64,000 nucleotides of DNA, taken from positions 124,001-188,000 of the IMG/VR virus record IMGVR_UViG_3300027708_000012, one strand, 5' to 3'. A program made the translations under genes and the position numbers. This document shows, piece after piece, positions 25,809 to 43,984 of the stretch; position 1 is the first letter of the stretch; each line of letters starts with the position of its first letter. Under the pieces are notes generated by a model, which had not been told where the DNA came from, searched no databases, and worked only from the letters and a program-made list of their open reading frames with translations.

Positions 25809-25861
25809 ATTTTTCTCCTTGATATTATTCAGCCCCGTAGGCACTAGAATAATGTGTGTAT

Positions 25862-26371: not shown

Positions 26372-26383
26372 GACATTACCTGA

Positions 26384-26961: not shown

Positions 26962-26971
26962 TTTTTTCTCC

Positions 26972-28579: not shown

Positions 28580-28680
28580 TCTATATCCTTATCTCTATTA
28601 CTACATATAAATTTAATAATTAGTGCCAACACAATAGTCCATCCAACTATCATACAACACCAAAAAAATAAATTAGACAT
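28576..28680 (-). CDS. Small single-TM membrane peptide (34 aa; not in the ORF track)
   Basis: MSNLFFWCCMIVGWTIVLALIIKFICSNRDKDIE; fills the gap and overlaps both neighbours. Confidence 0.5.
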   Translation of the reverse strand: MSNLFFWCCMIVGWTIVLALIIKFICSNRDKDIE

Positions 28681-29377
28681 TATTCATCTCGTTAGTCAAT
28701 GATTGAAAAATATCTGAATTCATAAAATTTAAAGTTAATTCGTGATCTCTAGGAGTCCTGGGGTCTTCATTTAAATGCAAATCAAATCCAATACTTACAC
28801 GCAGAGTAGATTCCGTATGTTCATCGGTATAGTGCCTTATATATCCTGGAAATATTGAGATATCTCCTTTGGTGTTATCAACTGGAACAATTAAATCTTT
28901 ATCTATTGGGCACCTATAATATGTTTTAGTTTTATAATTATCTAAATGTATATTACCGCTAAGATATGTATAAGGATCGATGCCATGCGCATGTTCGTTA
29001 ATTCTAGAACCTTGCCGCATAACATTATACCAACATACAATATTAATATCCCTTATGTGCGAATGATGATAATGAATATAATTTAAATAAGAAATTTGAA
29101 TAAATTTATACAAGTCGTTTAATTCTGGTAATTCTTTTCCAAACTGAAGTAAATTGTATCTTCCGTATCTACTAGTAATACTATCTATACCAAGTCCAGT
29201 CCCACCATCGTCTCTGTTAGCAGGATATGTATTGATGATTCGTTGCTCGTTATTAATAAGCCACTGTCTAACAATGTCTGTTTTATCAGCATTCCAAATA
29301 TCAGTTCCAATAGTAAAATCCCATGTTGGTGCAAATTCTGTTACAGGATGCATACTTTTTACTTTTAAAAATTTCAT
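28673..29377 (-). CDS. Putative 2OG-Fe(II) oxygenase
   Basis: WYNV...HAH...LSGNIHL...IFPGYIRHY...RVSIGFD, a DSBH pattern with HxH...H...RxS. Confidence 0.7.
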   Translation of the reverse strand: MKFLKVKSMHPVTEFAPTWDFTIGTDIWNADKTDIVRQWLINNEQRIINTYPANRDDGGTGLGIDSITSRYGRYNLLQFGKELPELNDLYKFIQISYLNYIHYHHSHIRDINIVCWYNVMRQGSRINEHAHGIDPYTYLSGNIHLDNYKTKTYYRCPIDKDLIVPVDNTKGDISIFPGYIRHYTDEHTESTLRVSIGFDLHLNEDPRTPRDHELTLNFMNSDIFQSLTNEMNNV

Positions 29378-30229
29378 TTAAGTACCCCATTCATTTTTAA
29401 ATAATGGTACTTGTAATCTGTCACTATATCGCAATCCTGCTTTCATTGCAAGTTCTGCAACACGTCGATTATTTAAAGAATATACACTTTCAACACCGCC
29501 TACTGGCATGAAATAAACTGGTCCTTCAAATCCAGCCAATCTATAAATGTCTGTAACTTCTAATGCTTCGTATGCATCTTGTTCTGTAGCAATAACAAAT
29601 TTTAAATATGTATAACCAATTTCTTGATATTCGCAAACAATATCAGGGCGAATTGCTTCTTCTCGTTTTTCACCACTACAACTTAGTTTGGCACTAACAC
29701 TAAATGTAATTCCTTTATTAAAGGGATCTCTAATAGACCAATCTTGTAAGTATTCTTTAAATTCTGGAGTTATTTGTTGAGTACCATTTGTTTCAAATGT
29801 AATTTCTTTTAATGGTCTCATGTATTCGTGATCTAACAAGTCTGGGTAAGCACGTTGCCAACCTAGCAAAGGCTCACCGCCTGTAATAACAAGATGCTCG
29901 TCTAGCCATGTTTTGTAAGGAAGAATTTCCATAATACGATCTACTATGCCGTTACTTTCCATCATAGGGCTTAAATCTTTAAATCTTGGATCCCAACTTG
30001 CATAGCTATCACAACCTGTGCTAACTAAGGGTAATTCGTTGTATGTTTTAAATTCTGCAATACGTTCTGCAATCAAATCATTTTCAGTACTTAATTGGCC
30101 AGCTGGCATACCAAAGCCCGCACATTTAAAATTACACCCAAATGTACGTAAAAACACAGACGGGACACCCATAAAGCGTCCTTCACCTTGAATACTATAA
30201 AATAGTTCTGCTATTTTAATTTTGCTCAT
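29378..30229 (-). CDS. queE: 7-carboxy-7-deazaguanine synthase (radical SAM)
   Basis: ELFYSIQGEG..GVPSVFLRTFGCNFKC...CDS, ITGGEPLL, FETNGT and LKFVI. Confidence 0.9.
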   Translation of the reverse strand: MSKIKIAELFYSIQGEGRFMGVPSVFLRTFGCNFKCAGFGMPAGQLSTENDLIAERIAEFKTYNELPLVSTGCDSYASWDPRFKDLSPMMESNGIVDRIMEILPYKTWLDEHLVITGGEPLLGWQRAYPDLLDHEYMRPLKEITFETNGTQQITPEFKEYLQDWSIRDPFNKGITFSVSAKLSCSGEKREEAIRPDIVCEYQEIGYTYLKFVIATEQDAYEALEVTDIYRLAGFEGPVYFMPVGGVESVYSLNNRRVAELAMKAGLRYSDRLQVPLFKNEWGT

Positions 30230-30923
30230 TTTTAAGTCCTTTTACTTTTTCTATCCAAATATTAATTACTATTGTAACTCTTAAATCTTCTGTATTTTTA
30301 TCACTAGGGTCAACTAAATGATTTATATATGACGGCATGATAATAAAATCATCTTCTTTACAGTCTAAAACTACTGATTCACTGTATTCAGTATTGTTCG
30401 GATCATCTAAATTAAATATATCAGAAACATGACTATATGTTTTATAGTATTGTACAAATGATGACGGATTCATTAATCTAGTACAAGTATGTCCTTCTTT
30501 CAAACTTAGATAGTGTACACATGAAAAACTATACCAATTATCCGTATCGTCTACAGTACCTAAATGATTATGCTGACGCATTTTTTGAACATGCTTATTA
30601 GCTGTTACATTTACTATTCTGTAATGATACTTAATAGGGCAAACAACTGACAAATTATCCATGAATGATTTAATAATCAAATCATATTGAGAATTTAATT
30701 GTGCAAGATCTAATTTTTTAAATTTAGGATTAGTTTCGTCGTTATAAGAATGATGCCAGTTATCTTTATTTTTAGAATCCCATTCATTTCTCAAAGGAGA
30801 AATCTCATAATTTTCTTGTATAATATTAAACAATTCTTGTTTATTATACAACCCAGGAGGGATCGTAGTCTTCCATATTGAAGGACTAAACAAATATAAT
30901 CGAGATAATTCGTTATTACTCAT
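30216..30923 (-). CDS. Putative 2OG-Fe(II) oxygenase
   Basis: LFSPSIW...HNH...FSCVHYL...IMPSYINHLV...RVTIVIN. Confidence 0.7.
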   Translation of the reverse strand: MSNNELSRLYLFSPSIWKTTIPPGLYNKQELFNIIQENYEISPLRNEWDSKNKDNWHHSYNDETNPKFKKLDLAQLNSQYDLIIKSFMDNLSVVCPIKYHYRIVNVTANKHVQKMRQHNHLGTVDDTDNWYSFSCVHYLSLKEGHTCTRLMNPSSFVQYYKTYSHVSDIFNLDDPNNTEYSESVVLDCKEDDFIIMPSYINHLVDPSDKNTEDLRVTIVINIWIEKVKGLKNEQN

Positions 30924-31249
30924 CTTTTTCTAAAATCTTCTACATCTTGAATTGCTGATTTTAATGTTTCTGCATAATTAAGGGCGCCTTGTTTACGTAG
31001 AATTAGTGTCGTTTCTGTATCAATGTACCCTTTACTTAGTAATGACCAAATGTGATACCACCGTGTCTTAGACCAAAAATTACTTTTTACAGTAGCGTAT
31101 ATAGTTACACTAATCTCATTGGCATCTGCTTCTACCCACACATTATGATCATGCTGGGAATCAGTACACTCACAAACAACTCGATAGACTTTACTATCTC
31201 CCCATTCGTTTGTTTTTAGAATGCCTTCAGCTGGTGTTTGGTATTTCAT
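30920..31249 (-). CDS. Hypothetical protein
   Basis: 109 aa ORF with a CxC...H motif. Confidence 0.55.
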   Translation of the reverse strand: MKYQTPAEGILKTNEWGDSKVYRVVCECTDSQHDHNVWVEADANEISVTIYATVKSNFWSKTRWYHIWSLLSKGYIDTETTLILRKQGALNYAETLKSAIQDVEDFRKR

Positions 31250-31362
31250 TTAATTTCTTTAATTATATATTTTGATGCAGGGTAATTTTCTCGAAGCCAT
31301 TCCAACAGACCAGGTTCAACCGGAAAACGAACATTATCAAATTTGTTAGTAATATATTTCAT
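31246..31362 (-). CDS. Small hypothetical protein (38 aa; not in the ORF track)
   Basis: MKYITNKFDNVRFPVEPGLLEWLRENYPASKYIIKEIK; ATGA overlaps at both ends. Confidence 0.6.
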   Translation of the reverse strand: MKYITNKFDNVRFPVEPGLLEWLRENYPASKYIIKEIK

Positions 31363-32096
31363 TTTGAAGCGTACTCTTGTTGCATCTTAATATTGTCAAA
31401 GAACTCTTTCTTAGTACCGTGGTCATCTTTAAATGCACCTTTCAATACTGTTGTCTGCGTCAAACTACTTTTAGCCATAATGCCGCGATTCTCACAACAA
31501 CCGTGTATAGCTTGTACATACACACCTATGTCTCTAGCTTCTGTTGCTTTTTGGATTTCACGGGCAATGTCATTGCAAAGCTCCTCTTGGAGTGTGCCTC
31601 GACGGGCACACCATTGTGCAATACGGGTGTACTTAGATAAACCAATAAGTTTTTGTGCCGCGATAATACCAATATAAGCAACACCGGTAACAGGCTGGTG
31701 ATGATGACTGCACATACTGCGCAACTCACTACGAACAACGAGCATACCTTCATAACGGTCTGCAGAATCATTTGGAAACGCTGTTGCGTCTGGTGCTTGT
31801 TCATACCTACCACTCATTACTTCATTAAAATACATTTTAGCCAATCTCTTGGCTGTGCCTTTTGAATTAGGATCGTTTTCGCGATCAATAAGCAAAGTAT
31901 CTAATACTTTTTCAAAAGCCTCTGTTGCTTCTTTGATTAAAATTGCTTTGTCTTCTTCGCTAACGTATTCGCTAATGTTGTCACCTGCCCAGAAGCGTTT
32001 ATTATCACGCTTCATCTTAAAGCGGATAACATCTGCAAGGTTACACTCTTCGTAGCCTTTATCGTCAATATTTTGATATGTTACGGATTCAGTCAT
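31359..32096 (-). CDS. folE: GTP cyclohydrolase I
   Basis: SMCSHHHQP, IGLSKY.R, LQE and H.C...RG motifs. Confidence 0.95.
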   Translation of the reverse strand: MTESVTYQNIDDKGYEECNLADVIRFKMKRDNKRFWAGDNISEYVSEEDKAILIKEATEAFEKVLDTLLIDRENDPNSKGTAKRLAKMYFNEVMSGRYEQAPDATAFPNDSADRYEGMLVVRSELRSMCSHHHQPVTGVAYIGIIAAQKLIGLSKYTRIAQWCARRGTLQEELCNDIAREIQKATEARDIGVYVQAIHGCCENRGIMAKSSLTQTTVLKGAFKDDHGTKKEFFDNIKMQQEYASK

Positions 32097-32114
32097 TATT
32101 ACTCCTATGTTTGT

Positions 32115-32143
32115 ATTATATAGGTTTATTTAGGTTTTTGCAA
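32115..32143 (-). promoter_or_regulatory. Sigma70-like promoter (with TAAATA in the spacer)
   Basis: TTGCAA-17 nt-TATAAT upstream of folE. Confidence 0.65.
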
Positions 32144-32148
32144 ATATT

Positions 32149-32355: not shown

Positions 32356-32506
32356 GTTCGGCGTTCTTTAGTTCGTCTTCAAGATATTCTTTATAACTAG
32401 TAAGTGTTGATATAGCTTGTATGCCTCCAGAACCTTCGGCTAGTTCTAACAAGTTTTTCTCAACTGCGGCAATTTTATCTTTGATTTCTTGAATAGTTAA
32501 AGTCAT
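32336..32506 (-). CDS. Hypothetical small coiled-coil protein
   Basis: Likely start at MTLTIQE (32506), ATGA overlap with the PRTase stop. Confidence 0.5.
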   Translation of the reverse strand: MTLTIQEIKDKIAAVEKNLLELAEGSGGIQAISTLTSYKEYLEDELKNAEHARSNH

Positions 32507-32994
32507 AACCAAAATTCCTCCCAGGGATAAACTAACCAACAATCTTCTTCTGATTTGTTTACAGTCCAAACATAATAGTCTGGATCTTTGAATTGACTGC
32601 TAAAATTGTGTGTCAATACAGCAAAGCGAACAGAATCTCCCCAGATAGCTTTCCATTTAGGATCGTCTGGAAAGCAACCGCTAGGCCAATCATTCTTAAT
32701 CCAATTAACAGTTGATCCTTGATCGTTAATATCATCGACTATCAAAATCTTTTTACCATTAAATGCATCTTCTGCCATGCCGAGGTTGCTAACTGTATCA
32801 CCGCCATCACGTAGACTAATATCTAGGCTGTTCATCTTGATACCCGTGTATTGACTAAGCAGATTAGCGGGAACAAGCCCGCCACGCCCGATGCCTACAA
32901 TGTAGTCAGGCCGCCAATAATGATTTTGCATTTGTCTAGCAATATCTAAGCAAGCACCTTCTACTTGTTGCCAAGTATAATGAATCTTTTTCAT
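32503..32994 (-). CDS. Type I phosphoribosyltransferase (Gpt/xanthine-PRT-like)
   Basis: VGIGRGGLVPA, PRPP loop ILIVDDINDQGST, and W..YPWE. Confidence 0.9.
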   Translation of the reverse strand: MKKIHYTWQQVEGACLDIARQMQNHYWRPDYIVGIGRGGLVPANLLSQYTGIKMNSLDISLRDGGDTVSNLGMAEDAFNGKKILIVDDINDQGSTVNWIKNDWPSGCFPDDPKWKAIWGDSVRFAVLTHNFSSQFKDPDYYVWTVNKSEEDCWLVYPWEEFWL

Positions 32995-33227
32995 AAAGTT
33001 AATGCGTATGCTAATGTGTTTAATTCACTCTTAGTCATAAAGAAGTTATACGTTTGACTATCTATAACTTTGCCGTCTTTCAAATTTTCTTGAATAAGGT
33101 CAAGGCTGTACAACCCTTTAGGACTTAGTACTTCGTGTTTTTCCATGCGTACACGGAAACCTTCCGATTGCTTAATTGTCATTTCTTTTGCAGTGACTGC
33201 AACCGATTCATGTAGTTCTTTCATCAT
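32991..33227 (-). CDS. Hypothetical protein
   Basis: 78 aa ORF with AGGAG SD. Confidence 0.55.
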   Translation of the reverse strand: MMKELHESVAVTAKEMTIKQSEGFRVRMEKHEVLSPKGLYSLDLIQENLKDGKVIDSQTYNFFMTKSELNTLAYALTL

Positions 33228-33658
33228 TCTTCTCCTTTAATTGCTTCAAATGTTCTATACTTACCCAATGCATTTATGTATTCATCATACAGTTTTTTTA
33301 GCTTTGGGTGCTTCTTTTCTAGTTTAACATCTCTTTCGGGAATTTGCAAGACTTTTTCGATTATACTTAGCCTTTCTTCCAAGTCCTGTCCATTTAATAC
33401 TAGTCGACCTTTGACTTCTAATTCCGGAGGATTAGTTTGTTTAACAGTTATTGCAGGATTGACATTGATAGTGCTAGTACCAGTGGTCCAAGCAGTTCCA
33501 TTTGATCCGGTGCTTGTTAAAAATGCACCAGCTGATCCTGTACTATTGGTAGCGTAAACTTGTCCGCTACCACCGCCACCACCTGCCCCACCGCCACCAA
33601 TATATACAGTACTACCAACTAATCCATTATTGACGACGTTCTTCGAGATATGACTCAT
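33224..33658 (-). CDS. Hypothetical protein (Gly/Ser/Thr-rich N-terminus)
   Basis: 144 aa ORF. Confidence 0.5.
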   Translation of the reverse strand: MSHISKNVVNNGLVGSTVYIGGGGAGGGGGSGQVYATNSTGSAGAFLTSTGSNGTAWTTGTSTINVNPAITVKQTNPPELEVKGRLVLNGQDLEERLSIIEKVLQIPERDVKLEKKHPKLKKLYDEYINALGKYRTFEAIKGEE

Positions 33659-34100
33659 TATGTATCCATTTATTTTTTACAAGAAATCCCCACTCACGTT
33701 TTTGAGGACCAGGCATAAACAGCGTCCAGGGTGTTACATTTGGATCTAGCTCAATGCGATGGTAACTACCAGCACTACAAGTGCGAAAATGACCAGGCCT
33801 CCGCCAATGTTTGATTTCACCTATCATTTCTCCTTTGGAATTAAATTCTGGAACATACTCATAATAGCCGCCTGCTAGTATCAGAGTGGCATATGGCCAT
33901 GGATGGTCATGAACATCGCCGGGATCTCCTTTATGAAACTTATGTAAGAATACATTAAAGGGAAAATGTTTACGGTCTTTTAAAAAGATATAGTAGCGAG
34001 TTAACAATGGCTCGTTACTTTGACGATCCATAATAATGCGTTTGCGGTCACGCTGTTCTAGCCAATTAAGGACGCGGTCTCTTATCTTCGGGAGTATCAT
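33627..34100 (-). CDS. Cupin-fold protein
   Basis: HDHPW...GGYYE...YHRIEL...WTLF metal-binding cupin pattern. Confidence 0.7.
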   Translation of the reverse strand: MILPKIRDRVLNWLEQRDRKRIIMDRQSNEPLLTRYYIFLKDRKHFPFNVFLHKFHKGDPGDVHDHPWPYATLILAGGYYEYVPEFNSKGEMIGEIKHWRRPGHFRTCSAGSYHRIELDPNVTPWTLFMPGPQKREWGFLVKNKWIHNESYLEERRQ

Positions 34101-34485
34101 AATGGTCTTTCACAAGTTTATAAACAGTTTTAAATTTTTCAAGTGCTATCTTTAGTCCAGGATATTCCTCGCACATTTTTTGTACACGATTAAAATCTGG
34201 AAAAGTATCAACCCACTCTTCTGGCAAATTAATTTTAAAGCTACTAGTGTCAATACTGATATTATTGAGTGTACTAATTTGTGCAGTAGTTAGTGTTGGA
34301 ATAGTAGACGATATACTAATAGAACCCACGTAGTTGCTAGAGTACGTATACGATGGATAGCTAGTACTAATACTATTTGTATCTATAGTGGTGATTGAAT
34401 TTAAATCAATAGTATCTAAACTACTGATTGTTATAGTATCACTTGATGTTGTTGAGTAACTCGTTGGCTGAGAAGTAGTTGTCAC
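34066..34485 (-). CDS. Hypothetical protein (Ser/Thr-rich N-terminus)
   Basis: 139 aa ORF. The C-terminal 'YPGLKIALEKFK' resembles the end of 33224..33658 ('HPKLKKLYDEY'). Confidence 0.5.
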   Translation of the reverse strand: MTTTSQPTSYSTTSSDTITISSLDTIDLNSITTIDTNSISTSYPSYTYSSNYVGSISISSTIPTLTTAQISTLNNISIDTSSFKINLPEEWVDTFPDFNRVQKMCEEYPGLKIALEKFKTVYKLVKDHYDTPEDKRPRP

Positions 34486-35533
34486 GTAAAGACTCCGTTT
34501 GTTTATGTAGCATTGGCAGTCTAGTTTTATAGTTTTCCATATGATCTATAATTGTTTTACAAACAAAAGGTCTATATGTAGAATATGATTCAAAACTTTC
34601 TGTCCACTCGCTAGGATATTTAAATGTATCAAATGCCATTTCGCTGTAACTAAGTCTATCTGGAACCATAGGGATAGAATCTACAATAGCACCTTCATAC
34701 CAACTAATTCCAAGTGTTTCTTGCAAGTTAGCACTAAACACCATTTTGGATTCGCCTAACAAGTTATGATATTCATTCTTGGTTAGTTGTTGATCCTGAC
34801 ATACTACAAATTCATATTGTGGCAAGTGTGTAGCCAAGTCACGGAATATGTCAACTTGTTTCTCTGGTGCAATGCGATGCGGGAACAAGATAAGATCACG
34901 TTTAGGCATGTTCTTATATGGTAGCAAAGTATCTTCCATATATTCCATAGGCCAACCTGTACGAACCATTTTGCCGTCATCATAGCGTTCAGCAAAATCT
35001 TCTTCGTACCATGGATTTTCGCTAGGATATCCATCTTCTAATAATTCGTCGATGAACAACTTGACATGAAACTCTGTGGCAAAGTAGTTATGATCAAATG
35101 CATGATAGAAACTTTTCTCTGCATGCCTAACCCACTTCTTTTTGCCAACAAGACGTCCTAAGAAATCTTGTGGATCATAACTACCGGCATGCCATAAGCC
35201 ATGTGTAACTACTGGAATATTCAGTAGTTCACTCATGTATTTTAAGTTTACAATGCCAGGATGCCAAGCGTCAGTAAACAAAAAATGATCGCCAGGCTTA
35301 ACTGCTCCGGAGCAAAATAAACGACCCATCTGTTCAACTTGGCTAGCCTTGTATATATTAGTGCCGCCAAAATTGAGAAATGCTCCAGGAGTGGTAGCAC
35401 TAGGAATGTCCGTAGGACCTGATATAATGTTGACATTGTGTCCAGCCTTTTGTAGGAGTTCGGGTACATGGGTCTTCCATTGACCCGTGTACCTTGTCTC
35501 AACTGATTCTAAGTCAATTAAGAATATATTCAT
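34439..35533 (-). CDS. GT-B fold glycosyltransferase
   Basis: ILFPHRIAPEKQ...SANLQETLGISWYEG...PDRLSYSEM, matching the GT4-like ExxGxxxxE motif. Confidence 0.8.
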   Translation of the reverse strand: MNIFLIDLESVETRYTGQWKTHVPELLQKAGHNVNIISGPTDIPSATTPGAFLNFGGTNIYKASQVEQMGRLFCSGAVKPGDHFLFTDAWHPGIVNLKYMSELLNIPVVTHGLWHAGSYDPQDFLGRLVGKKKWVRHAEKSFYHAFDHNYFATEFHVKLFIDELLEDGYPSENPWYEEDFAERYDDGKMVRTGWPMEYMEDTLLPYKNMPKRDLILFPHRIAPEKQVDIFRDLATHLPQYEFVVCQDQQLTKNEYHNLLGESKMVFSANLQETLGISWYEGAIVDSIPMVPDRLSYSEMAFDTFKYPSEWTESFESYSTYRPFVCKTIIDHMENYKTRLPMLHKQTESLRDNYFSANELLNNIK

Positions 35534-35781: not shown

Positions 35782-35795
35782 AGTAGCCTCTTATT

Positions 35796-36185
35796 TTAAT
35801 ATTTAATAAATGAACCATTTTCTCCGTCTTCGGAGACCTCGATCCAAACCTCACGATCTGGATACTTTTGTGAAATGACTTCATATAAATCGTTTGAAAT
35901 CATTTCACAACTCTTGTAGTCTAATGCTAGTATACTATCTTTGTACAAGTTTAGCAACCATCGTTTAAACTGAATAAACTCAATATCACGGTCATCGTGA
36001 ACTACACTGATCCATACTTTGAAATGGAAAATGTGACGATGCGGATAGCCTAGAAAACTTACATCATATTCGTCGCCTGTTGCCAGGTTAGGATCTGTAA
36101 GTGCAGCCGGATATTTGTGCATACCTTCTTTGTTAAAGGTAACCCAAATCATTTTGTTAGGTCTAACATCTTGTTTAATTTTCAT
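35796..36185 (-). CDS. queD: QueD-like T-fold enzyme (6-carboxytetrahydropterin synthase-like)
   Basis: H...HRHIF..V...DIEF..K...SCE....Y......V.IEVSED pattern, located near folE and queE. Confidence 0.7.
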   Translation of the reverse strand: MKIKQDVRPNKMIWVTFNKEGMHKYPAALTDPNLATGDEYDVSFLGYPHRHIFHFKVWISVVHDDRDIEFIQFKRWLLNLYKDSILALDYKSCEMISNDLYEVISQKYPDREVWIEVSEDGENGSFIKY

Positions 36186-36610
36186 ACTTTTTCCTCAAAC
36201 ATTTCAGGATTTAATTTTACTTCATTTACATATCTAGTCAAGTGATGTCCGTTTTGTTTTGTTACTGACACATGACAATTTCTGCACAGACATTCTAAAT
36301 TTTTAGGGTCATTATTATGACGGTCTCCATCAATATGATTAACATCTAGTTGTTCTGGATAAAGAATTGTTGCTGTACAAGCAAAACCGTGATGAGCGTC
36401 GATGTTGGAACATTTTTGTTTCATTTTCCAATTGTCTACTTCATGTTTTCTAGTAGAACGATGTGGAGTACAAAACATTTTCCATTTAGCTGTTAATGAT
36501 CCGTTTAACTTCTTACCTGCATTGTGATAGCTGGCTCTGTTAGTGCAACCGGGTAAGGCGCACACAGGACTGTAGTTGTTAATTACAGATCGGTTGATTC
36601 TTGTAGTCAT
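36182..36610 (-). CDS. HNH endonuclease with N-terminal Cys/His (Zn-binding) region
   Basis: LDVNHIDGDRHNNDPKNLECLCRNCH. Likely start at MTTRIN (36610) with ATGA overlaps on both sides. Confidence 0.85.
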   Translation of the reverse strand: MTTRINRSVINNYSPVCALPGCTNRASYHNAGKKLNGSLTAKWKMFCTPHRSTRKHEVDNWKMKQKCSNIDAHHGFACTATILYPEQLDVNHIDGDRHNNDPKNLECLCRNCHVSVTKQNGHHLTRYVNEVKLNPEMFEEKV

Positions 36611-37146
36611 GTTGGTGTATCTTGTGTGTACTGATCCCAATGAGTATACTTGTCTTTACTCATTAGGCTCTGCAAGTGATGAGTCCACACACCTGGATTG
36701 GTAGCACCCCAAGTTCGGTCGTCCAGTTTAAGTGTGGCATTGTAGTTGAGTTGATTAATGTAAGGTAACTTAACACTAATCATGGGAACAAAGCGGGGAT
36801 ACTCGTTATAGGCAGACTCTAATACGCCTTCGATGTGTTCAACACCAAAGTCTAGTGACACCCAATAGCCTGCTTTTAGACAGCCTATAATAACTTCATC
36901 CCACGCTTTATATTCTTCTTGCGAAATACTTTTAGGATTAAAACTTTGACTAGTGCCAAAGTAAATGTGTTTAATACGTTTAGACTCATCCCAGTATGCC
37001 TGGGTATCATCAGCCTTACGCAGTATTTCTTCTAGTGGAGGAGTACCTACCACAAACAGTGTAAACATACCATAACAAATAGTATGTTCGACTTCGTAAC
37101 CTGTAAAGTAAACGACACCTTGTCGTTCTTCAGTGTTTAGTCCCAT
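36607..37146 (-). CDS. Hypothetical protein within the modification cluster
   Basis: 179 aa alpha/beta-type ORF (TLFVVG, HIYFG, WVSLDF). Confidence 0.6.
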   Translation of the reverse strand: MGLNTEERQGVVYFTGYEVEHTICYGMFTLFVVGTPPLEEILRKADDTQAYWDESKRIKHIYFGTSQSFNPKSISQEEYKAWDEVIIGCLKAGYWVSLDFGVEHIEGVLESAYNEYPRFVPMISVKLPYINQLNYNATLKLDDRTWGATNPGVWTHHLQSLMSKDKYTHWDQYTQDTPT

Positions 37147-38042
37147 TTAATATAGCCTCTGCTGTAACCGATTGGACGATCCATACCATCCGCAAACGCT
37201 TGTTGCCATTCAGTAGTACGATTATATGACCTTGTCCAGAAAGAATCAACCTCAAGATAACCGTTTTCAATCCAATACTTGGCCATATGCATACAATCAA
37301 TGAATTTTGGATTACGGGGACTAGGTTTAACTGTAGTCACAGCTTTCCAAAGTTGAGACTGTGCTTCCGCTTTGCTTACGGCTTTACCTACGCCGTCTAC
37401 AATCACAGCATTATCATTTAGATTTATCTCTATACCAAGTTCGTATTTTCCAGTAAGGTCCACTACAACATCGTAGCTTTCACTAGTTCCTAACAGTAGT
37501 TTATCTCCCCACAAATCTTGGTTACTTGAACCTAGGACATCTACGTGAAAGATATACCCATTTAGTCGCATTGTATGATATGCAACCCAGGCAAGGAAAC
37601 CACTACCAATTATAAGCATGCGATTGTTATCATGCCGGCCTTGCCGATCATGCAAATACTCCTTGGCCTGCTCAATAAGATTAATACCACAAGCAACTGG
37701 TTCTAAAATATAACGAGGATGTGCTTCGGGAATTTTTACATATTCACCTTTGCGTACAGTATACTGATCAGCATAGGCCGGCTCACCGCGTGTAGCAACA
37801 TAGTCTCCAGTTTGTACGTCATTGCAATTTGCACCAACTGACATAACTTGTCCGATGCCTTCGTGTCCTTGCATGTGCAATGGCAATGGATCAAATTCGC
37901 CCACCATCATATCTATATCGCTACGGCACACACCAGTCATTACAGCTCGGACATAAATGCTATCTTGACCCCAAGCTGGAATTTCATAGTCAACTTCTTC
38001 AAAGTAGCCTTTGCCTTCTGTTTGTAAACACTTTACTTTCAT
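37137..38042 (-). CDS. Zn-dependent medium-chain dehydrogenase/reductase
   Basis: GVCRSD, GHEGIG, EPVAC and IIGSGFLA. Confidence 0.85.
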   Translation of the reverse strand: MKVKCLQTEGKGYFEEVDYEIPAWGQDSIYVRAVMTGVCRSDIDMMVGEFDPLPLHMQGHEGIGQVMSVGANCNDVQTGDYVATRGEPAYADQYTVRKGEYVKIPEAHPRYILEPVACGINLIEQAKEYLHDRQGRHDNNRMLIIGSGFLAWVAYHTMRLNGYIFHVDVLGSSNQDLWGDKLLLGTSESYDVVVDLTGKYELGIEINLNDNAVIVDGVGKAVSKAEAQSQLWKAVTTVKPSPRNPKFIDCMHMAKYWIENGYLEVDSFWTRSYNRTTEWQQAFADGMDRPIGYSRGYIKWD

Positions 38043-38920
38043 AATTTTTCTATTTGTTCATGAATCCATGCGTCTATTTCAAATTGATTAGTCCAGAATT
38101 TAGCATCGTCAACACGACTAACAGCTTCTTTAATCATTGCTGTATATGCTTCTTCTGGACACCATCCTAATTCAAAACGTTCTACTCGATTGCCATCTGT
38201 AATAAATTCAATAGAACTGTCTTCAATGTCCATACTACGCCAATTGGCAGCACATGACCATTTGTTACCAAAATCGATAACACATGCATCATCTACATCA
38301 TATGTTCCGTTAGCATTAATAATTCCGTATTCTGTGCTATCTATATCTTCTAGAACCCAATTCATTAAAGATACTTTATTGTTTACTTTTTCAGAGCGCC
38401 AGTTGGGGTTTATAGCAATATAAAGACTTAATAAATGAGGCATTAAATCACGACTAACACCACCAAAGGATAATTTTTTAGTAGTAAACCAACTACCGGG
38501 ACTAGGAATACAGTTTTTTCTAATCCAACGTATGTTTACTATCTTTGCTTGATTGGCTAATTCTTTTAACTCACTGATGTTACTACGCCACATGTTGTTT
38601 TTAACCATCATGAAACGTGTATATTTAAATTCTTCTAAAAGACGTTGCCATGCAAAGCTATTTGATACCCCAGGCTTTTCTACAAATACAATTTTACTAT
38701 AAGGTGCAACTTTGCTTGCAAGTTCAAAATGTGTAAAATTAGGAGTACAGATATGTGCTGTATCAAATGTTTTATGAATCAAAATGGCTTGATCTACAGA
38801 TGTATACATTGCACCTTTATTTGGATCTTGATCTACTGTAATAATATCATGTCCAAGTTTTTCTAGAACAGTTTTGTACAACTGTCCTATACCCATGCCA
38901 ATAATTAAACTACGCTTCAT
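38039..38920 (-). CDS. Gfo/Idh/MocA family NAD(P) oxidoreductase
   Basis: IIGMGIG, ICTPNFTH, VFVEKP and GGVSRDLMPH. Confidence 0.9.
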   Translation of the reverse strand: MKRSLIIGMGIGQLYKTVLEKLGHDIITVDQDPNKGAMYTSVDQAILIHKTFDTAHICTPNFTHFELASKVAPYSKIVFVEKPGVSNSFAWQRLLEEFKYTRFMMVKNNMWRSNISELKELANQAKIVNIRWIRKNCIPSPGSWFTTKKLSFGGVSRDLMPHLLSLYIAINPNWRSEKVNNKVSLMNWVLEDIDSTEYGIINANGTYDVDDACVIDFGNKWSCAANWRSMDIEDSSIEFITDGNRVERFELGWCPEEAYTAMIKEAVSRVDDAKFWTNQFEIDAWIHEQIEKL

Positions 38921-39152
38921 TTTTATTTTGCTCGTATTGTTTAAACAATCTTGTTACGTCTTCCATGCGTTCTTGGAATACATCAGGCGCCTGAAGTGCT
39001 GTACGCTGCATATCCCAGTCCGTTGGATAGTGTCTCAAACATGATCTTGCACGATCCTTAATTGCTTTAGGAACTCGAGGAGTAGTTAAGATCTCTAGTA
39101 AAAATCTTTGAGTTTGCACTACTGCTCGATATCTTTCGTCAGGTAACGTCAT
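38910..39152 (-). CDS. Hypothetical protein
   Basis: 80 aa ORF. Confidence 0.55.
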   Translation of the reverse strand: MTLPDERYRAVVQTQRFLLEILTTPRVPKAIKDRARSCLRHYPTDWDMQRTALQAPDVFQERMEDVTRLFKQYEQNKNEA

Positions 39153-40845
39153 GTACGCTTGCCTCTAATGCGTCAAGTTTATTAATCGACTCTTCATCAA
39201 AGTCGGGCTCTTCTTCTGATTGTACAGGATCTGGATCTACTTCGTCAAATAATACGGAGAACATTTTACCTGCATTAACAGTTTTCTTACCGGTAGCACC
39301 TCGTGTACCTGGAATAGCTTGCCAAAATTTATCAAAACTATCAATAATAGCTTCAGCGGTAGCACGATCGGGTGTACTAAAGATAGCATCAACTACATCT
39401 TTAAAGTAAACACGTTCAAACTTTTCATCTACTAACATAGCAGGACATAGTCCGGCATCGTATTGACGATTAGCTTCTTGTACACTATTCAAATGTAGCC
39501 AAACATTATGGCCCATCATAATAGCGTAAGTGAAACTATCCCAACTTGTTTTACCTTCTTTGCCTATTTTATTTAGGTCTCCTGGGCCGTAGATACAAAT
39601 ATCTTTAACTTCTACTCCATCCATTAATGGACTTGTAGTAAATGACTCAAAATGCCCATCTTGTACTACGACGTCTTGGAATAATCTAGTATCTTTGGCG
39701 TATTTTTTGTTGTCAAGACTTGGCAACATGCGGTAGAGCCACTTTTCTCTATCTTTGATTTCTGTTTGGACATAGATTTGTCCGTTTGCTGTTGCCAAAA
39801 ACGGTGAGGCGCAGTCAAAAGATATGGTAAAGTTTTCATTATGGTATTTCCTAATTGCTCGTTGTATGTCAGTTAATAATAATGCCCACTCTAATTTAGA
39901 GGTGCCCAGGAAGTGCATCCAATCTTGATGACCTTTTTCAAGTAAGCCGTCAAATTTCAATGCCACTAATCTACGTAATACTAAATCTACATCGCACATG
40001 TTTTGTCCACCCATAGCCCAGCCATTAAAAGCCTTGTCGCCATAGATTTTAGGATCGCAAAAATCTTTCATTTGCTGATACCAGTCTTCTGCTTGTCCGT
40101 GATTCTCGCCTTGCAATACGTTTAAGAACTTACAAGCACCAGTACGATGTTTGATAAAGTATTCATTGTTATACTTTGTAGCATTTACCGCTTGTTGATA
40201 TGAACTAATGCCAGTGGCTTTCTTACCAACAGGACTACGTTCTACCCAGGCTGGAATATCGAGCACCATGCCATAGTCCATGAGTGCATCCATCCATGCT
40301 AACACTTGTTCACGTTTCTTTTGTGCCGCATCTAACAATGCTTGATAGTTTTTAACATGGTCAATCTTAGTATACTTAGGATTGCCGTTTTTGTCTGTCT
40401 TAGGATGTCCTGTTGGATGTAGTTGTGGTACTAGTTCAACACCTTTTGCCATTACTTCTTTCCATTTAGCCGCAACTTCAGGACCGTTAGGATCTCGCCA
40501 TTCGCCTGCCCACACGCCTTTACCAATCTGGAATCCGCCCGAGTCGCCTAATACCCAGCTAGTAGATCTATCTCTATTTCGAAACATATCTTCACTAGGA
40601 TCAAATTTAGTTAAATCTAAATTAGCATGACCTGCTGAATACAAACAGTGGTCAAAGTAAAATGCCGCATTAGGGTTCAGGTAGTTCATAGCTTCAATGC
40701 CTAATGGTCCAAAGCTAGCAGGAATACGTGCAGGATCAACATAGTTACTATGACGCTGTTTACCTATGTAAGTGCTATAAAACCCTGACGTTGCTGGCAG
40801 GAAATATGCATAGTCTAATTGAGTTGCTGTTAAATTTTTATTCAT
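39139..40845 (-). CDS. tRNA-guanine transglycosylase-fold protein, probable DNA 7-deazaguanine transglycosylase (DpdA-like)
   Basis: DSGGFQ, MVLDIP, NVLQG, HFLG and SFDCASP motifs. No CxCxxC Zn motif of tRNA TGT. Clustered with folE, queD and queE. Confidence 0.8.
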   Translation of the reverse strand: MNKNLTATQLDYAYFLPATSGFYSTYIGKQRHSNYVDPARIPASFGPLGIEAMNYLNPNAAFYFDHCLYSAGHANLDLTKFDPSEDMFRNRDRSTSWVLGDSGGFQIGKGVWAGEWRDPNGPEVAAKWKEVMAKGVELVPQLHPTGHPKTDKNGNPKYTKIDHVKNYQALLDAAQKKREQVLAWMDALMDYGMVLDIPAWVERSPVGKKATGISSYQQAVNATKYNNEYFIKHRTGACKFLNVLQGENHGQAEDWYQQMKDFCDPKIYGDKAFNGWAMGGQNMCDVDLVLRRLVALKFDGLLEKGHQDWMHFLGTSKLEWALLLTDIQRAIRKYHNENFTISFDCASPFLATANGQIYVQTEIKDREKWLYRMLPSLDNKKYAKDTRLFQDVVVQDGHFESFTTSPLMDGVEVKDICIYGPGDLNKIGKEGKTSWDSFTYAIMMGHNVWLHLNSVQEANRQYDAGLCPAMLVDEKFERVYFKDVVDAIFSTPDRATAEAIIDSFDKFWQAIPGTRGATGKKTVNAGKMFSVLFDEVDPDPVQSEEEPDFDEESINKLDALEASVHDVT

Positions 40846-41097
40846 TTATTTTCTTATCCATACAAAATAATATGGGTCAAATGCCCAACCTTCTGGCGGA
40901 TTTAATGGGTCAAATCTTTCTGGATTAACATAAGGAGTTATTGGATTACTAAACCACTCTGTATACCTACGTGTTATTTCTTCTCTATCGCGATCGCTAG
41001 TATACTCATGGGCCATACGGCCTTCGGTTATGGTTTCGTATTCTCCGCCGAACCACATCCAAGGCCATATTCCATGAGTAAAAAACTTTTTAATCAT
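40846..41097 (-). CDS. Hypothetical protein
   Basis: 83 aa ORF. Confidence 0.5.
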   Translation of the reverse strand: MIKKFFTHGIWPWMWFGGEYETITEGRMAHEYTSDRDREEITRRYTEWFSNPITPYVNPERFDPLNPPEGWAFDPYYFVWIRK

Positions 41098-42259
41098 TGT
41101 CTATCTCAGGTTTGTAAAACACTCGAGCCATTGGCACAGCACTTACAGTGCTAATTAAACTCATAATCACTACGGCAGCAAACATATTAACACTAATAAC
41201 GTTGGCTGTCAACAGCATAGTAACCAAGAAGATTTCCATCAGGCCTTTGTTTTGTAGCAAAGCAGTTTTGAAACAAACAACTCTGAGTCCTTGGTCCTTA
41301 TAAGCTAACCAAACACCGACAAACTTAGTCCCAACAGCAATGATATACATAGCAATGGCACCTAGTAGAATAGTTTCAAAATCTAAAGTCCAATTAGTCT
41401 TTAAACCAGACCAGATAAAGAACACAGGCATTAACCAAACCATTTGCTGTTCGGCCATTCCTTCATTCCATTTAATAGTATCTCGTGGAGTAATCATACC
41501 TGCTAAGAACGCACCTAATACATAGTGTAATCCCGCCCAATGACTAAATGCCGCCATAGTCAATACCATAGCAACTGTTAAATTAGCATACGATTTTTCG
41601 CCGGCAAGCTCTAAAACCTTAGGCCAAACAAAATACAATACTGATAATACTGCAAAGAATATAGCCGAGTAGATAGCATACTTGCCCATACTAACAATAA
41701 CAGCTACAGTTAGCCATAGAACTAAATCGTCAAAGGTAACTAAGGCCAGTAGCTTACGACCCATGTTACTAGGCCACATACCAATTTCTTTACAAGCAAT
41801 AACCAGCATTGGCATAGCTGTAATACAAGTGGCTACACCCATGCCCCAAGCATATTGCCAGAATGGTCGTTCTGTAGTATGCCAAACAGGATTATCAAAG
41901 AACAATAAAAAACTACAGCCTGCTAATAAGATAGGAACAATAATAACTTGGAATGATTGTATCCAAATACTATTACCTTCTTGTGCTATAACTTCTTTAG
42001 GTTTAAGTTCGATACCGGCAATAAAAGCAAAGATTGTAATTGCTAAAATTTGAATAGCATCTAACCCTGTCTTAATCGGCGCAGTAAAAACTGTGCTAAA
42101 CAGCTCTGGATAAAACTGCCCTAGCGCACTAGGCCCAAGGCAAATGCCAAAGGCAATTTGCGCCATTGGCAACGGAATCCACTTTTCCATTCGTGTAATT
42201 TTTAATAGTAGCCACGGTATAAACACCATAGCGGCTATAATAAACAATAAATTACCCAT
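41090..42259 (-). CDS. Cation/H+ antiporter (CPA2, membrane domain only)
   Basis: About 12 hydrophobic segments, with GICLGPS, FIAGIE, FDD, LGAFLAG and PVFF..SG. Confidence 0.85.
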   Translation of the reverse strand: MGNLLFIIAAMVFIPWLLLKITRMEKWIPLPMAQIAFGICLGPSALGQFYPELFSTVFTAPIKTGLDAIQILAITIFAFIAGIELKPKEVIAQEGNSIWIQSFQVIIVPILLAGCSFLLFFDNPVWHTTERPFWQYAWGMGVATCITAMPMLVIACKEIGMWPSNMGRKLLALVTFDDLVLWLTVAVIVSMGKYAIYSAIFFAVLSVLYFVWPKVLELAGEKSYANLTVAMVLTMAAFSHWAGLHYVLGAFLAGMITPRDTIKWNEGMAEQQMVWLMPVFFIWSGLKTNWTLDFETILLGAIAMYIIAVGTKFVGVWLAYKDQGLRVVCFKTALLQNKGLMEIFLVTMLLTANVISVNMFAAVVIMSLISTVSAVPMARVFYKPEIDND

Positions 42260-42434
42260 TTGTTCTCCCCCATTTAATTTTTAACCAGACTCGTTCCATA
42301 ATATAATGTACAGCAGTTAAGATAATATGAATAATAATAGCATCACTTAGCCCAGTCCATATGGCGGTTATAAGTAATGCTATTATTCGATAGCTTACTG
42401 CTCGTAGTATAGTACGTTTATGTGTTTCAGTCAT
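42252..42434 (-). CDS. Small membrane protein (DUF2061-like)
   Basis: ETHKRTILRAVSYRI...HYIMERVW..IKWG. Confidence 0.65.
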   Translation of the reverse strand: MTETHKRTILRAVSYRIIALLITAIWTGLSDAIIIHIILTAVHYIMERVWLKIKWGRTNG

Positions 42435-43177
42435 TACTTGCTTTGTGCTGGCAAGATGTATTCGTATACTGCAATACCGCTATCAACTGAAATATTCAAT
42501 GCGCCGGCATCTGCAATACGCATAGTCTTATCGCCTGTTAAATTCAAAATACTTTGAACTTGTGTAACTGGCCAAGACCATGTTTGTTTCAATTTTCCAG
42601 TAACACCTGATTGAAATACAAAATTACCAGTGTGTGTACTTGCATCACCAAAGCTAAACACTAGATTATTATCTTTAGTAGTAACTTGGAATGTTTGTTC
42701 TTCGCTATGCGCAGCACTTTGAAATTTAAAACGCTGAATACTAGCCATAGCAGGCTCAAATTCTAGATCCCAATGCGATCCTTTGAATTTGACGCTTTTT
42801 AATTTTTCGTTAATGACGTCTTGATTCATAAAACGATAATCGTTTTCAAAGTCTCCACCGCCATTCTGGAAATGCAAACCTGTTGGAATCTCCTCGCCGT
42901 TACGTTCTTGCTTTACTACCTTAATAGTAAAGTTTTCTTTGTACTCTGGGCACTTTAGTATAATGTCTAATTTATTAAGATTAGGCATTCCGAATGTGCC
43001 TTCAAAGTCTTCAACTGGCGCTTTAGTCTTGGCGTTAAGAATCACACTGCGATCTTCTGCCATAGACTCAATAGTCACGTCTGTTGTGGTAGCCGAAACT
43101 TTTACCAAAGGTAAAAATCCTAGACTATGCGTGTGTGCTACTAGGTCTTGTAATACGTCTTTCATATAGTTCTCCAT
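42434..43177 (-). CDS. Probable DNA polymerase sliding clamp (gp45-like)
   Basis: About 245 aa with a two-repeat beta/alpha pattern and C-terminal YEYILPA, close to polB. Confidence 0.55.
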   Translation of the reverse strand: MENYMKDVLQDLVAHTHSLGFLPLVKVSATTTDVTIESMAEDRSVILNAKTKAPVEDFEGTFGMPNLNKLDIILKCPEYKENFTIKVVKQERNGEEIPTGLHFQNGGGDFENDYRFMNQDVINEKLKSVKFKGSHWDLEFEPAMASIQRFKFQSAAHSEEQTFQVTTKDNNLVFSFGDASTHTGNFVFQSGVTGKLKQTWSWPVTQVQSILNLTGDKTMRIADAGALNISVDSGIAVYEYILPAQSK

Positions 43178-43185
43178 GATGTGTT

Positions 43186-43214
43186 ATTATATAGGTTTTT
43201 TTAGACAATGTCAA
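43186..43214 (-). promoter_or_regulatory. Consensus sigma70 promoter
   Basis: TTGACA-17 nt-TATAAT. Confidence 0.85.
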
Positions 43215-43984
43215 GGATTTTTCCTTACCTTTTTGTTATACTTTATTGCCGTTTCTAATATAGATAGATTAACATCTAATCTGTTTCCATAACGTATAAA
43301 TGCTGTTGTGTCTTTGGGAAAGCATGCTCCGCCAAAGCCTCGTTGATCATCAGGCCCAGGTACTTGCATATGACTATGGCCGATTCGATTGTCGTATGAT
43401 AGTACTTGCCGAATTACATCAAAGTCTGCACCGTTCTGCTCGCATATGTCATATAGCTGATTAAAAAACGATACTTTCAAACTTAAAAAACAATTAGTGG
43501 CATATTTGATTGTACTAGCTTCTGCAAATGTAGTGTTTAAAAATGATTTACAATTAGGCAACGATTCTTCAAACATTGTTTGCCACATTTTTCCAGGATC
43601 TTCTCCTCCTAGAATCATATACTTTTGATTGGCAAAATCTTCGTTAGCACTGGCCGATCGTAGAAATTCTGGACTGTAACAAATATCGTGATCTTGATAA
43701 TTATCAGCCAACTCTTCTAAGTAGTCAGGCGGTACTGTCGATTTTATCAAAACAGGTACACCATACGGTAAGTTATTCAAGACTGATTCTATCTGTCTAG
43801 TATCACAATCACCGTCGGTTGTACCAGGTGTTCCAACACAAATAATAACTCCGTCAGGATTAGGAAAATCACCTAATGTCGAAGTTGAGAATCTTGGATC
43901 CACAATATGTAGTTCGTTTTGATCTTTTAATGAATTTGCTACAGCCTTGCCTACAAAACCGTAACCTGCAATTATAATTTTCAT
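43211..43984 (-). CDS. ugd: UDP-glucose/GDP-mannose dehydrogenase family protein (lacks C-terminal domain)
   Basis: GYGFVG, CVGTP, IKSTVPP, SPEFLR, KY..N.FL..KVSFFN and GFGGACFPKD. Confidence 0.85.
   Translation of the reverse strand: MKIIIAGYGFVGKAVANSLKDQNELHIVDPRFSTSTLGDFPNPDGVIICVGTPGTTDGDCDTRQIESVLNNLPYGVPVLIKSTVPPDYLEELADNYQDHDICYSPEFLRSASANEDFANQKYMILGGEDPGKMWQTMFEESLPNCKSFLNTTFAEASTIKYATNCFLSLKVSFFNQLYDICEQNGADFDVIRQVLSYDNRIGHSHMQVPGPDDQRGFGGACFPKDTTAFIRYGNRLDVNLSILETAIKYNKKVRKNP

Follow-up and report, generated by a model that had tools for sequence, protein, structure and literature searches.

The analyzed window, a 64,000-nucleotide stretch (positions 124,001 to 188,000) of the IMG/VR virus record IMGVR_UViG_3300027708_000012, belongs to a roughly 345-kb freshwater jumbo phage and carries a block of co-oriented and mostly overlapping genes next to polB and the sliding clamp. 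In window coordinates, the following features were found:

28673-29377, minus strand: 2OG-Fe(II) oxygenase
29378-30229, minus strand: QueE-like radical SAM CDG synthase
30216-30923, minus strand: 2OG-Fe(II) oxygenase
31359-32096, minus strand: FolE, GTP cyclohydrolase I
32503-32994, minus strand: Gpt/XPRT-like purine phosphoribosyltransferase (PRTase)
33627-34100, minus strand: cupin
34439-35533, minus strand: GT4-like GT-B glycosyltransferase (GT), 364 aa
35530-35781, minus strand: conserved unknown protein of 83 aa, overlapping the GT start by 4 nt
35796-36185, minus strand: DpdL, T-fold, proposed CDG decarboxylase
36182-36640: HNH gene
36607-37146, minus strand: h179, a conserved acidic unknown protein of 179 aa
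37137-38042, minus strand: MDR zinc-alcohol-dehydrogenase-like oxidoreductase
38039-38920, minus strand: Gfo/Idh/MocA oxidoreductase, overlapping MDR by 4 nt
39139-40845, minus strand: long DpdA-like DNA-guanine transglycosylase, 568 aa, TGT fold
41090-42259: Na+/H+ exchanger
42434-43177, minus strand: sliding clamp
43211-43984, minus strand: short UGDH-like dehydrogenase
43986-46655, minus strand: family B DNA polymerase (PolB)

The observation behind the original prediction, a 7-deazaguanine DNA-modification cluster interleaved with sugar-tailoring genes, is confirmed, as every gene it named is present at its place, although it did not mention the HNH gene, the Na+/H+ exchanger and h179. In regard to the genes of the deazaguanine pathway, FolE was recognized by PF01227 (5e-40) and QueE by phrog_2076 (2e-52), while the NCBIfam QueE models match the latter at 1e-12, below their cut-offs. 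The gene previously described as QueD-like carries the DpdL signature L-x3-HRH-x-F (as defined in PMC10516641) and not the QueD signature CxxxHGH, hits phrog_17812 (6e-30), and is homologous to phiST CGPG_00067 and to the DpdL of ACP17. No QueC, QueF or true QueD was found by Pfam among the window ORFs scanned, which were most but not all of them, and a phmmer search with phage QueD sequences and the X1 PAPS-reductase-family protein against a six-frame translation also returned nothing. The TGT-fold protein has DSGGFQ and FDC motifs and no CxCxxC zinc motif, and DSGGFQ, D196, HxLG and the FDC Asp are invariant across the homologs from PA5oct, Phosso, ACP17, X1 and BCSR5. All 22 of its PDB profile hits are TGT and align in register, but weakly (E 0.15-1). 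The PRTase was identified by PF00156 and PRK09177 (4e-13), and its isolate homologs are mostly in deazaguanine phages, namely the phiST group, the Campylobacter CP21 group and BUCT-ZZ01. As for the syntenic anchors, the clamp is 33% identical to the Phosso protein annotated as sliding clamp, while PolB (PF00136 and PF03104) is 49% identical to that of Phosso.

The GT gives no Pfam or NCBIfam hit, and its donor and acceptor are unknown, but it has an EX7E motif and conserved R220/K225, and its AF2 model (pLDDT 94.7), with which no fold search was made, shows two Rossmann domains. Its best PDB profile hit is 8xsg, the AmGGT glucosyltransferase (3e-5), followed by WlaC and WbaZ. For the MDR gene, PF08240 was hit at 4e-10, and the protein is 34% identical to PA5oct EST35_0363. 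Gfo was recognized by PF01408, its best PDB hit is DgpA, a glycoside 3-oxidase (1e-7), and its only full-length isolate homologs are in PA5oct-like phages. The UGDH-like protein hits PF00984 and PF03721 but lacks the C-terminal UDP-binding domain, and TIGR03026 scores 149 bits against a cut-off of 190, covering positions 66-297 of 413. The AF2 model of h179 has pLDDT 89 and no significant fold match.

Whether the GT and the oxidoreductase pair co-occur with DpdA-like genes in related phages had been put forward in advance as a test, with lack of linkage to dpdA/que genes counting against the idea, and the central idea survived testing in relatives. In 57 of 57 related metagenomic loci, the GT (present with at least 75% identity) sits with the long DpdA, DpdL, FolE and QueE, and h179 and the 83-aa protein were likewise present in 57 of 57. 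The GT also lies next to, or overlaps, DpdL or DpdA in five isolate lineages (Phosso, PA5oct-like, ACP17, X1/BUDD and BCSR5), and 17 of the 22 isolate records with a GT hit, out of 50,697 records, also carry DpdL. Among five further divergent metagenomic lineages, three (L169, L174 and L177) have DpdL, DpdA or h179 next to it, while two divergent GT homologs have no dpd genes nearby, within 9 kb on either side in L178 and on a 7-kb contig in L171. Homologs of h179 lie next to DpdA in ACP17, next to the GT in L174, between DpdL and a radical SAM gene in L177, and after Gfo-MDR in PA5oct. On the other hand, the related Vibrio phage 2.275.O keeps the long DpdA but has QueC, QueF and YhhQ in place of DpdL and the GT, and DpdL and the GT therefore occupy the post-CDG slot of the pathway.

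The remaining genes showed different patterns of conservation. Gfo and MDR always occur together, in 37 of 57 loci and never one alone, and the same cassette with h179 recurs in the same order in PA5oct, which fits a tailoring role for this co-inherited optional pair. The PRTase and the UGDH-like gene were each present in 48 of 57 relatives. The cupin (phrog_4786, 'cysteine dioxygenase') was present in 54 of 57, but its family is widespread in unrelated phages without deazaguanine genes, and it is probably not specific to the pathway. Both 2OG oxygenases (phrog_81), together with the HNH gene and the Na+/H+ exchanger, are strain-specific insertions, the oxygenase at 28673-29377 being found in only 3 loci, which are the window's own or near-identical contigs, and that at 30216-30923 in only 2 loci.

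Taken together, the interpretation that CDG or a derivative is inserted into DNA and then decorated with a phage-made sugar is partly supported. What the analysis supports is a 7-deazaguanine DNA-modification cluster that stops at or after CDG, with a GT linked to it by conserved synteny across distant phage lineages and with Gfo-MDR as an accessory cassette, while a contribution of the 2OG oxygenases, the cupin and the UGDH-like protein is not supported, and the presence of a sugar on the DNA base is inferred and was not tested. According to the model that we favor, with moderate confidence, the steps resting on homology are the formation of 7-carboxy-7-deazaguanine (CDG) from GTP by FolE and QueE, with QueD coming from elsewhere in the genome or from the host, the processing of CDG by DpdL, whose proposed activity is decarboxylation to 7-deazaguanine, and the exchange of this base for guanine in phage DNA by a long, zinc-less member of the TGT/DpdA family. 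The base is therefore more likely 7-deazaguanine-type than CDG, which removes the obvious carboxyl handle, and 7-deazaguanine has no obvious O-acceptor. The further steps are inferred. The GT4-like retaining glycosyltransferase would add a sugar from a nucleotide-sugar donor to the deazaguanine, either on the free base before insertion, as HuiG does at N2 in huimycin biosynthesis, or on the base once it is in DNA. In strains that carry it, the Gfo-MDR cassette would then oxidise or reduce the sugar, possibly helped by h179, giving strain-level variants of the modification. The Gpt-like PRTase most plausibly recycles the displaced guanine, while the 2OG oxygenases, the HNH gene, the Na+/H+ exchanger and the cupin would not be part of the system. 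If so, the final DNA base may carry a sugar, which has never been reported for a purine in DNA. No chemistry has been measured for any phage that has this GT, but PA5oct DNA, which carries an unidentified G modification, resists G-containing restriction sites and is hit by a sensor of modified G (PMC12191111). Related to this, ACP17 dpdL plus dpdA alone gave no dDG in E. coli, and the authors suggested that other enzymes may be needed (PMC10516641).

Alternatively, although this is less likely, the DNA could carry plain 2'-deoxy-7-deazaguanine, as in Cellulophaga phage phiST, with the GT and the oxidoreductases glycosylating, for example, a host or phage glycan or protein, and sitting in this early-gene region only because of shared expression timing. 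DpdL does not imply a sugar, since phiST has DpdL, a DpdA3 and a PRTase homolog and carries dDG without any GT. Many members of the GT family are named 'glycosyltransferase involved in cell wall biosynthesis' by JGI, and the L178 homolog mentioned above also fits this view. However, synteny with DpdA or DpdL is kept across at least 6 lineages whose gene orders and polymerase types otherwise differ, the GT is translationally coupled to DpdA in PA5oct and ACP17, DpdL and the GT are replaced together by QueC and QueF in 2.275.O, and the E. coli result with dpdL plus dpdA also speaks against it.

It is also possible, though somewhat more doubtful, that the GT acts only on a small-molecule intermediate and that the sugar is not retained in DNA, the product being a glycosylated base or pterin (huimycin-like or biopterin-glucoside-like) that serves as a transient carrier or protected form, or a separate metabolite. 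The combination of FolE, a T-fold enzyme and a GT resembles pterin-glycoside pathways, in which pteridine glycosyltransferases are known (PMC5683033), and HuiG acts on a free base. The GT family is acidic, with a median pI of 5.75, but the long DpdA is just as acidic, so pI does not discriminate between these readings. Moreover, DpdL lacks the catalytic Cys of QueD/PTPS, no deglycosylating enzyme was identified, and no PDB or profile link to pteridine GTs was seen.

An unlikely scenario is that the modification is made at the nucleotide level before replication, where the Gpt-like PRTase would convert CDG or 7-deazaguanine to the ribonucleotide, as TubE does in tubercidin biosynthesis, leading to 7-deaza-dGTP that is incorporated by PolB, with DpdA playing a minor or different part. 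In its favor, the deazaguanine phages with PRTase homologs include those with complete G replacement (phiST group, Campylobacter CP21 group), the tubercidin pathway uses CDG, a PRTase and a decarboxylase, and L171 links a GT homolog to a PRTase and a NUDIX gene. However, the PRTase is absent from 9 of 57 relatives and was not found near the clusters of PA5oct, ACP17 or Phosso, DpdA is universal, and the PA5oct restriction pattern suggests a motif-specific modification (GA/GG), which points to a post-replicative step. Finally, although the family descends from tRNA-guanine transglycosylases and the X1 homolog is annotated queuine tRNA-ribosyltransferase, it is very unlikely that the TGT-fold protein modifies host or phage tRNA instead of DNA, given the absence of the zinc motif, its fixed position beside polB and the clamp in several lineages, the G-modified DNA of PA5oct, and the treatment of the ACP17 homolog as a DpdA by Cui et al.

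Among known systems, the DpdL-dependent modification of phiST (Cui et al. 2023, PMC10516641) likewise comprises FolE, QueE, DpdL and a TGT-family DpdA without QueC, with a Gpt-like PRTase in the genome and a cluster near the polymerase. There, however, the DpdA3 is short (259 aa) and only marginally related to the 568-aa protein (hhalign probability 9%), GT, h179, Gfo and MDR are absent, and the product is unglycosylated dDG. The unannotated clusters of PA5oct-like phages (Wroclawvirus), ACP17, Phosso, X1/BUDD and BCSR5 hold the same module of long DpdA, GT, DpdL, QueE and FolE beside the replisome genes, but gene order and accessory genes differ, none has a chemically identified base, and in PA5oct the Gfo-MDR-h179 cassette lies 25 kb away from the core module. 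In T-even phages, GT-B enzymes (alpha- and beta-glucosyltransferases) also add a sugar from a nucleotide-sugar donor to a non-canonical DNA base as a counter-defence, yet the acceptor there is a pyrimidine hydroxymethyl group, the acceptor atom here is unknown, and no sequence relation was detected, with no T4 GT among the PDB profile hits. In huimycin and dapiramicin biosynthesis, HuiG, a glycosyltransferase with a Glyco_transf_4 domain whose homology to this GT was not tested, attaches GlcNAc to the 2-amino group of a 7-deazaguanine-derived base made by FolE, QueD and QueE (PMC7439116; bioRxiv 10.64898/2026.04.15.718813). The product is a bacterial secondary metabolite, a free base and not in DNA, built on a preQ0 scaffold made with QueC. 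A sugar on a 7-deazaguanine derivative within a nucleic acid is also found in the mannosyl- and galactosyl-queuosine of vertebrate tRNA (PMC10690763), there in RNA, on the cyclopentenediol of queuosine and attached by eukaryotic enzymes.

The window is part of the IMG/VR contig IMGVR_UViG_3300027708_000012, a 345-kb jumbo phage whose PolB is closest to that of Sinorhizobium phage Phosso (49% identity), followed by Atu_ph07 (45%) and the Rak2/121Q-like giants (about 43%). Between 28.6 and 46.7 kb every gene lies on the minus strand, and most have abutting or overlapping stop and start codons. A megablast search of the region against isolate phages found nothing. The gene content described in the original prediction was confirmed. 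Family searches recovered FolE, a QueE-like radical SAM enzyme, two 2OG oxygenases, a PRTase, a cupin (phrog_4786), an MDR ADH_N protein, a Gfo/Idh/MocA protein, a UGDH-like protein and PolB, while the clamp rests instead on 33% identity to the Phosso protein annotated as sliding clamp. Pfam, PHROG and NCBIfam gave nothing for the glycosyltransferase (GT), for the 568-aa DpdA-like protein or for a conserved 179-aa unknown, here called h179. This last protein, an HNH gene and a Na+/H+ exchanger had been overlooked in the prediction. Features of the region with positions relevant to the following are these.

33224-33658, minus strand, a Gly-rich, low-complexity ORF of 144 aa between the GT and the PRTase
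34066-34485, minus strand, a Ser/Thr-rich, low-complexity ORF of 139 aa between the GT and the PRTase, overlapping the GT end by 47 nt and found in 13 of 57 related loci
35796-36185, minus strand, a T-fold gene, DpdL
36182-36640, minus strand, an HNH endonuclease inserted between h179 and DpdL
39139-40845, minus strand, the long DpdA-like protein (568 aa)
41090-42259, minus strand, a Na+/H+ exchanger family membrane protein (PF00999, 2e-23) inserted between the clamp and DpdA
43211-43984, minus strand, a short UGDH-like protein

It is uncertain whether both low-complexity ORFs are real genes. The HNH endonuclease is probably a homing element, and PA5oct likewise has a homing endonuclease, which splits its polB. 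The exchanger, which together with the adjacent 83-aa ORF occurs only in this strain (2 of 57 loci), is an unusual cargo for a replication module.

In regard to the pathway genes expected of a phage DpdA-type 7-deazaguanine DNA modification system, FolE and QueE are present, while no QueD, QueC or QueF is detectable among the ORFs of the 64-kb window that were scanned. Since the rest of the 345-kb genome was not examined for QueD, the presence of the complete FolE, QueD and QueE set is left undecided. A look for queC beyond the window had been requested in advance by the original prediction, and a scan of IMG/VR with the QueC of Vibrio phage 2.275.O returned no locus from this contig among the best 80, which is weak evidence. 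The T-fold gene, taken in the prediction for a QueD-like gene, carries L-x3-HRH-x-F in place of CxxxHGH, the signature that Cui et al. 2023 used to define DpdL, the proposed CDG decarboxylase of the dDG phage phiST. It is homologous to phiST CGPG_00067 (30% identity, 1e-5) and to ACP17 DpdL (53% identity, 1e-34), and thus fits the definition of DpdL.

The 568-aa protein carries DSGGFQ and an FDC aspartate and has no CxCxxC motif. Its alignment with homologs from PA5oct, Phosso, ACP17, X1 and BCSR5 shows invariant D-S-G-G-x-Q, D196, H-x-L-G and the FDC aspartate. A profile of that alignment hits only tRNA-guanine transglycosylases in the PDB, weakly (E 0.15) but in register with the TGT active-site motifs. 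Although the window protein gives no hit to Pfam TGT, it therefore qualifies as a TGT-superfamily transglycosylase with the catalytic Asp residues. On the other hand, clear homology to the short DpdA3 of phiST (CGPG_00065) was not obtained, as hhalign gave a probability of 9% and a pairwise E of 0.0037 and tblastn did not retrieve phiST, so that we treat the protein as a separate long DpdA group. In Vibrio phage 2.275.O (locus L181, MG592671.1 328741-337242) the same long DpdA sits after polB and the clamp, followed by QueF, a YhhQ-type transporter, QueC, an amidohydrolase and FolE, with no DpdL and no GT; the 370-aa protein next to DpdA in that phage is not a GT. This natural module swap shows that the protein is a deazaguanine-pathway enzyme, and that DpdL and the GT fill the slot taken there by QueC and QueF. 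Furthermore, in a sister clade (L019, L033, L047, L064, L077, L082) DpdA is only 35-41% identical to that of the window, while the GT (75-81%), DpdL (64-88%) and PolB (about 74%) stay close. The transglycosylase allele seems to have been exchanged or to evolve very fast, and that might change the DNA target motif.

The 364-aa GT has the features of GT-B, GT4-like retaining glycosyltransferases. An EX7E motif (E272-x7-E280) is conserved together with Arg and Lys residues typical of GT4 enzymes, the AlphaFold (AF2) model is confident (pLDDT 94.7) and shows two Rossmann-like halves, and the family profile matches the nucleotide-sugar domain of AmGGT (8xsg, 3e-5; identity of 8xsg from PMC12159676), WlaC and WbaZ. 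Pfam finds nothing for the window protein and only a faint hit for a further sequence, P0260. No T4 GT appeared among the PDB profile hits, and as the predicted GT structure was not used in a fold search, homology to the T4-type DNA glucosyltransferases (AGT/BGT) is neither supported nor excluded. The isoelectric point was also considered as a proxy for DNA binding, but it is uninformative, because both the GT and DpdA are acidic. A homology search with the GT returned only close relatives and was of no use for diversity, although it disclosed more than 8,000 clusters at 90% identity, the family being very abundant in freshwater metagenomes. The search among representatives and the structure predictions used only sequences from the window, from IMG/VR and from the set with P identifiers.

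The original prediction had itself proposed, as a trial of the idea, to see whether the GT and the oxidoreductase pair co-occur with DpdA-like genes in related phages, and held that a lack of linkage would count against it; linkage was found. Among 57 distinct IMG/VR loci that span clamp to FolE, DpdA, h179, DpdL, the GT and an 83-aa ORF between DpdL and the GT occur in 57 of 57, the cupin in 54, the PRTase in 48 and the UGDH-like gene in 48. Gfo and MDR occur together in 37 loci, one alone in none and neither in 20. The Na+/H+ exchanger, the HNH gene and the ORF h83b occur in 2 loci, which are the window's own contig or near-identical copies of it, and the two 2OG oxygenases likewise occur only in the window's own or near-identical contigs. 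Among 50,697 isolate records, the GT hits 22 and DpdL hits 28, and seventeen records have both, in five lineages (Phosso, PA5oct-like, ACP17, X1/BUDD, BCSR5). In each of them the GT lies within a few genes of DpdL or DpdA and often overlaps it.

The GT family has 219 clusters at 50% identity below 1e-30, of which seven were looked up; two sat on contigs too short to judge, leaving five divergent lineages. L169 reads polB-DpdL-GT-x-DpdA, L174 reads h179-GT, and L177 reads FolE-DpdL-h179-radical SAM-GT in a PolA-type phage, while L171 and L178 show no dpd genes nearby. In L171 (ena:ERZ27301263 k141_1617686) the GT homolog is flanked by a second conventional GT4, a PurT-like ATP-grasp enzyme, a PRTase and a NUDIX hydrolase, which could be a nucleotide-level variant of the pathway. 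A distant GT homolog (26% identity) in Xanthomonas phage PhiXhv-15 (locus L182, PV764602.1 105658-108892) sits next to GlmS and an LmbE/BshB-like deacetylase, with no dpd genes nearby, which hints at a GlcNAc or GlcN donor chemistry in that phage. Conversely, in Rhizobium phage RHph_I1_18 (locus L167, MN988519.1 37655-41968) DpdL lies next to FolE and a macro-domain (Appr-1-p processing) protein, with QueD nearby but no GT and no obvious DpdA in the stretch.

The Gfo protein belongs to the Gfo/Idh/MocA oxidoreductases, as PF01408 scores 30.5 bits against a cut-off of 24 and both GxGxxG and VEKP are visible in the sequence. Its full-length homologs among isolates occur only in PA5oct-like phages, where Gfo, MDR (34% identity) and h179 follow each other exactly as in the window, 25 kb from the DpdA-GT-DpdL block. 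The best solved relative of the Gfo protein is DgpA, which oxidises the sugar of glycosides, but this is a weak lead only. The predicted structure of h179 is confident, yet searches against PDB and BFVD gave no significant match. Comparison of the h179 profile by hhalign with the small neighbours in Phosso, X1, BCSR5, L169 and phiST was negative, so h179 is not universal, and the Phosso 'glycosylase' is not an h179 homolog and has no Pfam hit.

Of the remaining genes, the cupin family is common in phages without deazaguanine genes. The PRTase has PF00156 above its cut-off, whereas PRK09177 scores 49 bits against a cut-off of 138, so that the protein is Gpt-like without its assignment as xanthine-guanine phosphoribosyltransferase being settled in either direction. 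Its isolate homologs are mostly in deazaguanine phages, namely the phiST group, the Campylobacter CP21 group and BUCT-ZZ01, which fits either salvage of displaced guanine or a tubercidin-like nucleotide route. The UGDH-like protein has the NAD-binding and central domains and the catalytic Cys (GGxCxxKD), but it lacks the C-terminal UDP-binding domain and scores 149 bits against the TIGR03026 cut-off of 189.8, thus falling short of a UDP-glucose 6-dehydrogenase. Similar short proteins occur in the Campylobacter phages known to carry dADG (CP220, CPt10 and CP21), but also in many unrelated phages, and in Microbacterium phages they lie next to glycosyltransferases. With the UDP-binding domain missing, their substrate is unclear.

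Taken together, the cluster is a DpdA/DpdL-type deazaguanine DNA-modification module, the GT is a genuine, conserved member of it, and Gfo-MDR(-h179) is an optional add-on shared with PA5oct. The glycosylation of the DNA base is the best reading but an inferred one, and we consider the whole mechanism about as likely to be right as wrong. No virion DNA was analysed here for a 7-deazaguanine derivative, and the evidence for one is only indirect: DNA of the relative PA5oct resists several G-containing restriction sites and is targeted by nucleases that sense modified G, the base itself not being identified (PMC12191111). The interpretation offered in the original prediction is accordingly supported in part, as its inclusion of the 2OG oxygenases and the cupin, and its assumption that CDG itself is the acceptor, are not supported. 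The main alternative is plain dDG, with the GT doing something else. In regard to chemical precedent, HuiG, which has a Glyco_transf_4 domain, N-glycosylates the 2-amino group of a 7-deazapurine base, while our literature searches found no report of a sugar on a deazaguanine in DNA, nor of the GT in dpd clusters.

It is also possible, though this is a tentative reading that we hold somewhat less likely than not, that phage DNA of this widespread freshwater jumbo-phage group, and of PA5oct-like, ACP17-like and Phosso-like phages, contains a glycosylated 7-deazaguanine, which would be the first sugar-bearing purine analogue found in any genome. In this view DpdL and a dedicated GT4-like enzyme would make it, and the optional Gfo-MDR-h179 cassette would then remodel the sugar, for example to a keto or epimerised form, so that close relatives would differ in their DNA chemistry. 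Known 7-deazaguanine DNA bases carry only small C7 groups, and sugars are known only on pyrimidines in phage DNA; a glycosylated deazaguanine would be a new class of DNA hypermodification. It would also explain the result of Cui et al., who could not obtain dDG from ACP17 or phiST dpdL plus dpdA in E. coli and suggested that other enzymes may be required. Furthermore, it could identify the unknown G modification of PA5oct-like phages, which are phage-therapy candidates, with a bearing on restriction, CRISPR and sequencing behaviour, and as cultured isolates exist, the prediction is directly testable.

Outside the module, the window holds the following other cargo.

14864-15433, plus strand, a third 2OG oxygenase
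19742-20404, minus strand, ThyX
21927-24280, minus strand, a MoxR-like AAA ATPase with a DUF2201/VWA metallopeptidase
26512-26961, minus strand, rubrerythrin
52902-53339, minus strand, a ferritin-like protein
57509-59785, minus strand, a ClpB-like chaperone
59848-60717, minus strand, DnaJ

The minus-strand genes among them lie in two stretches, 19742-28579 and 52902-60717.
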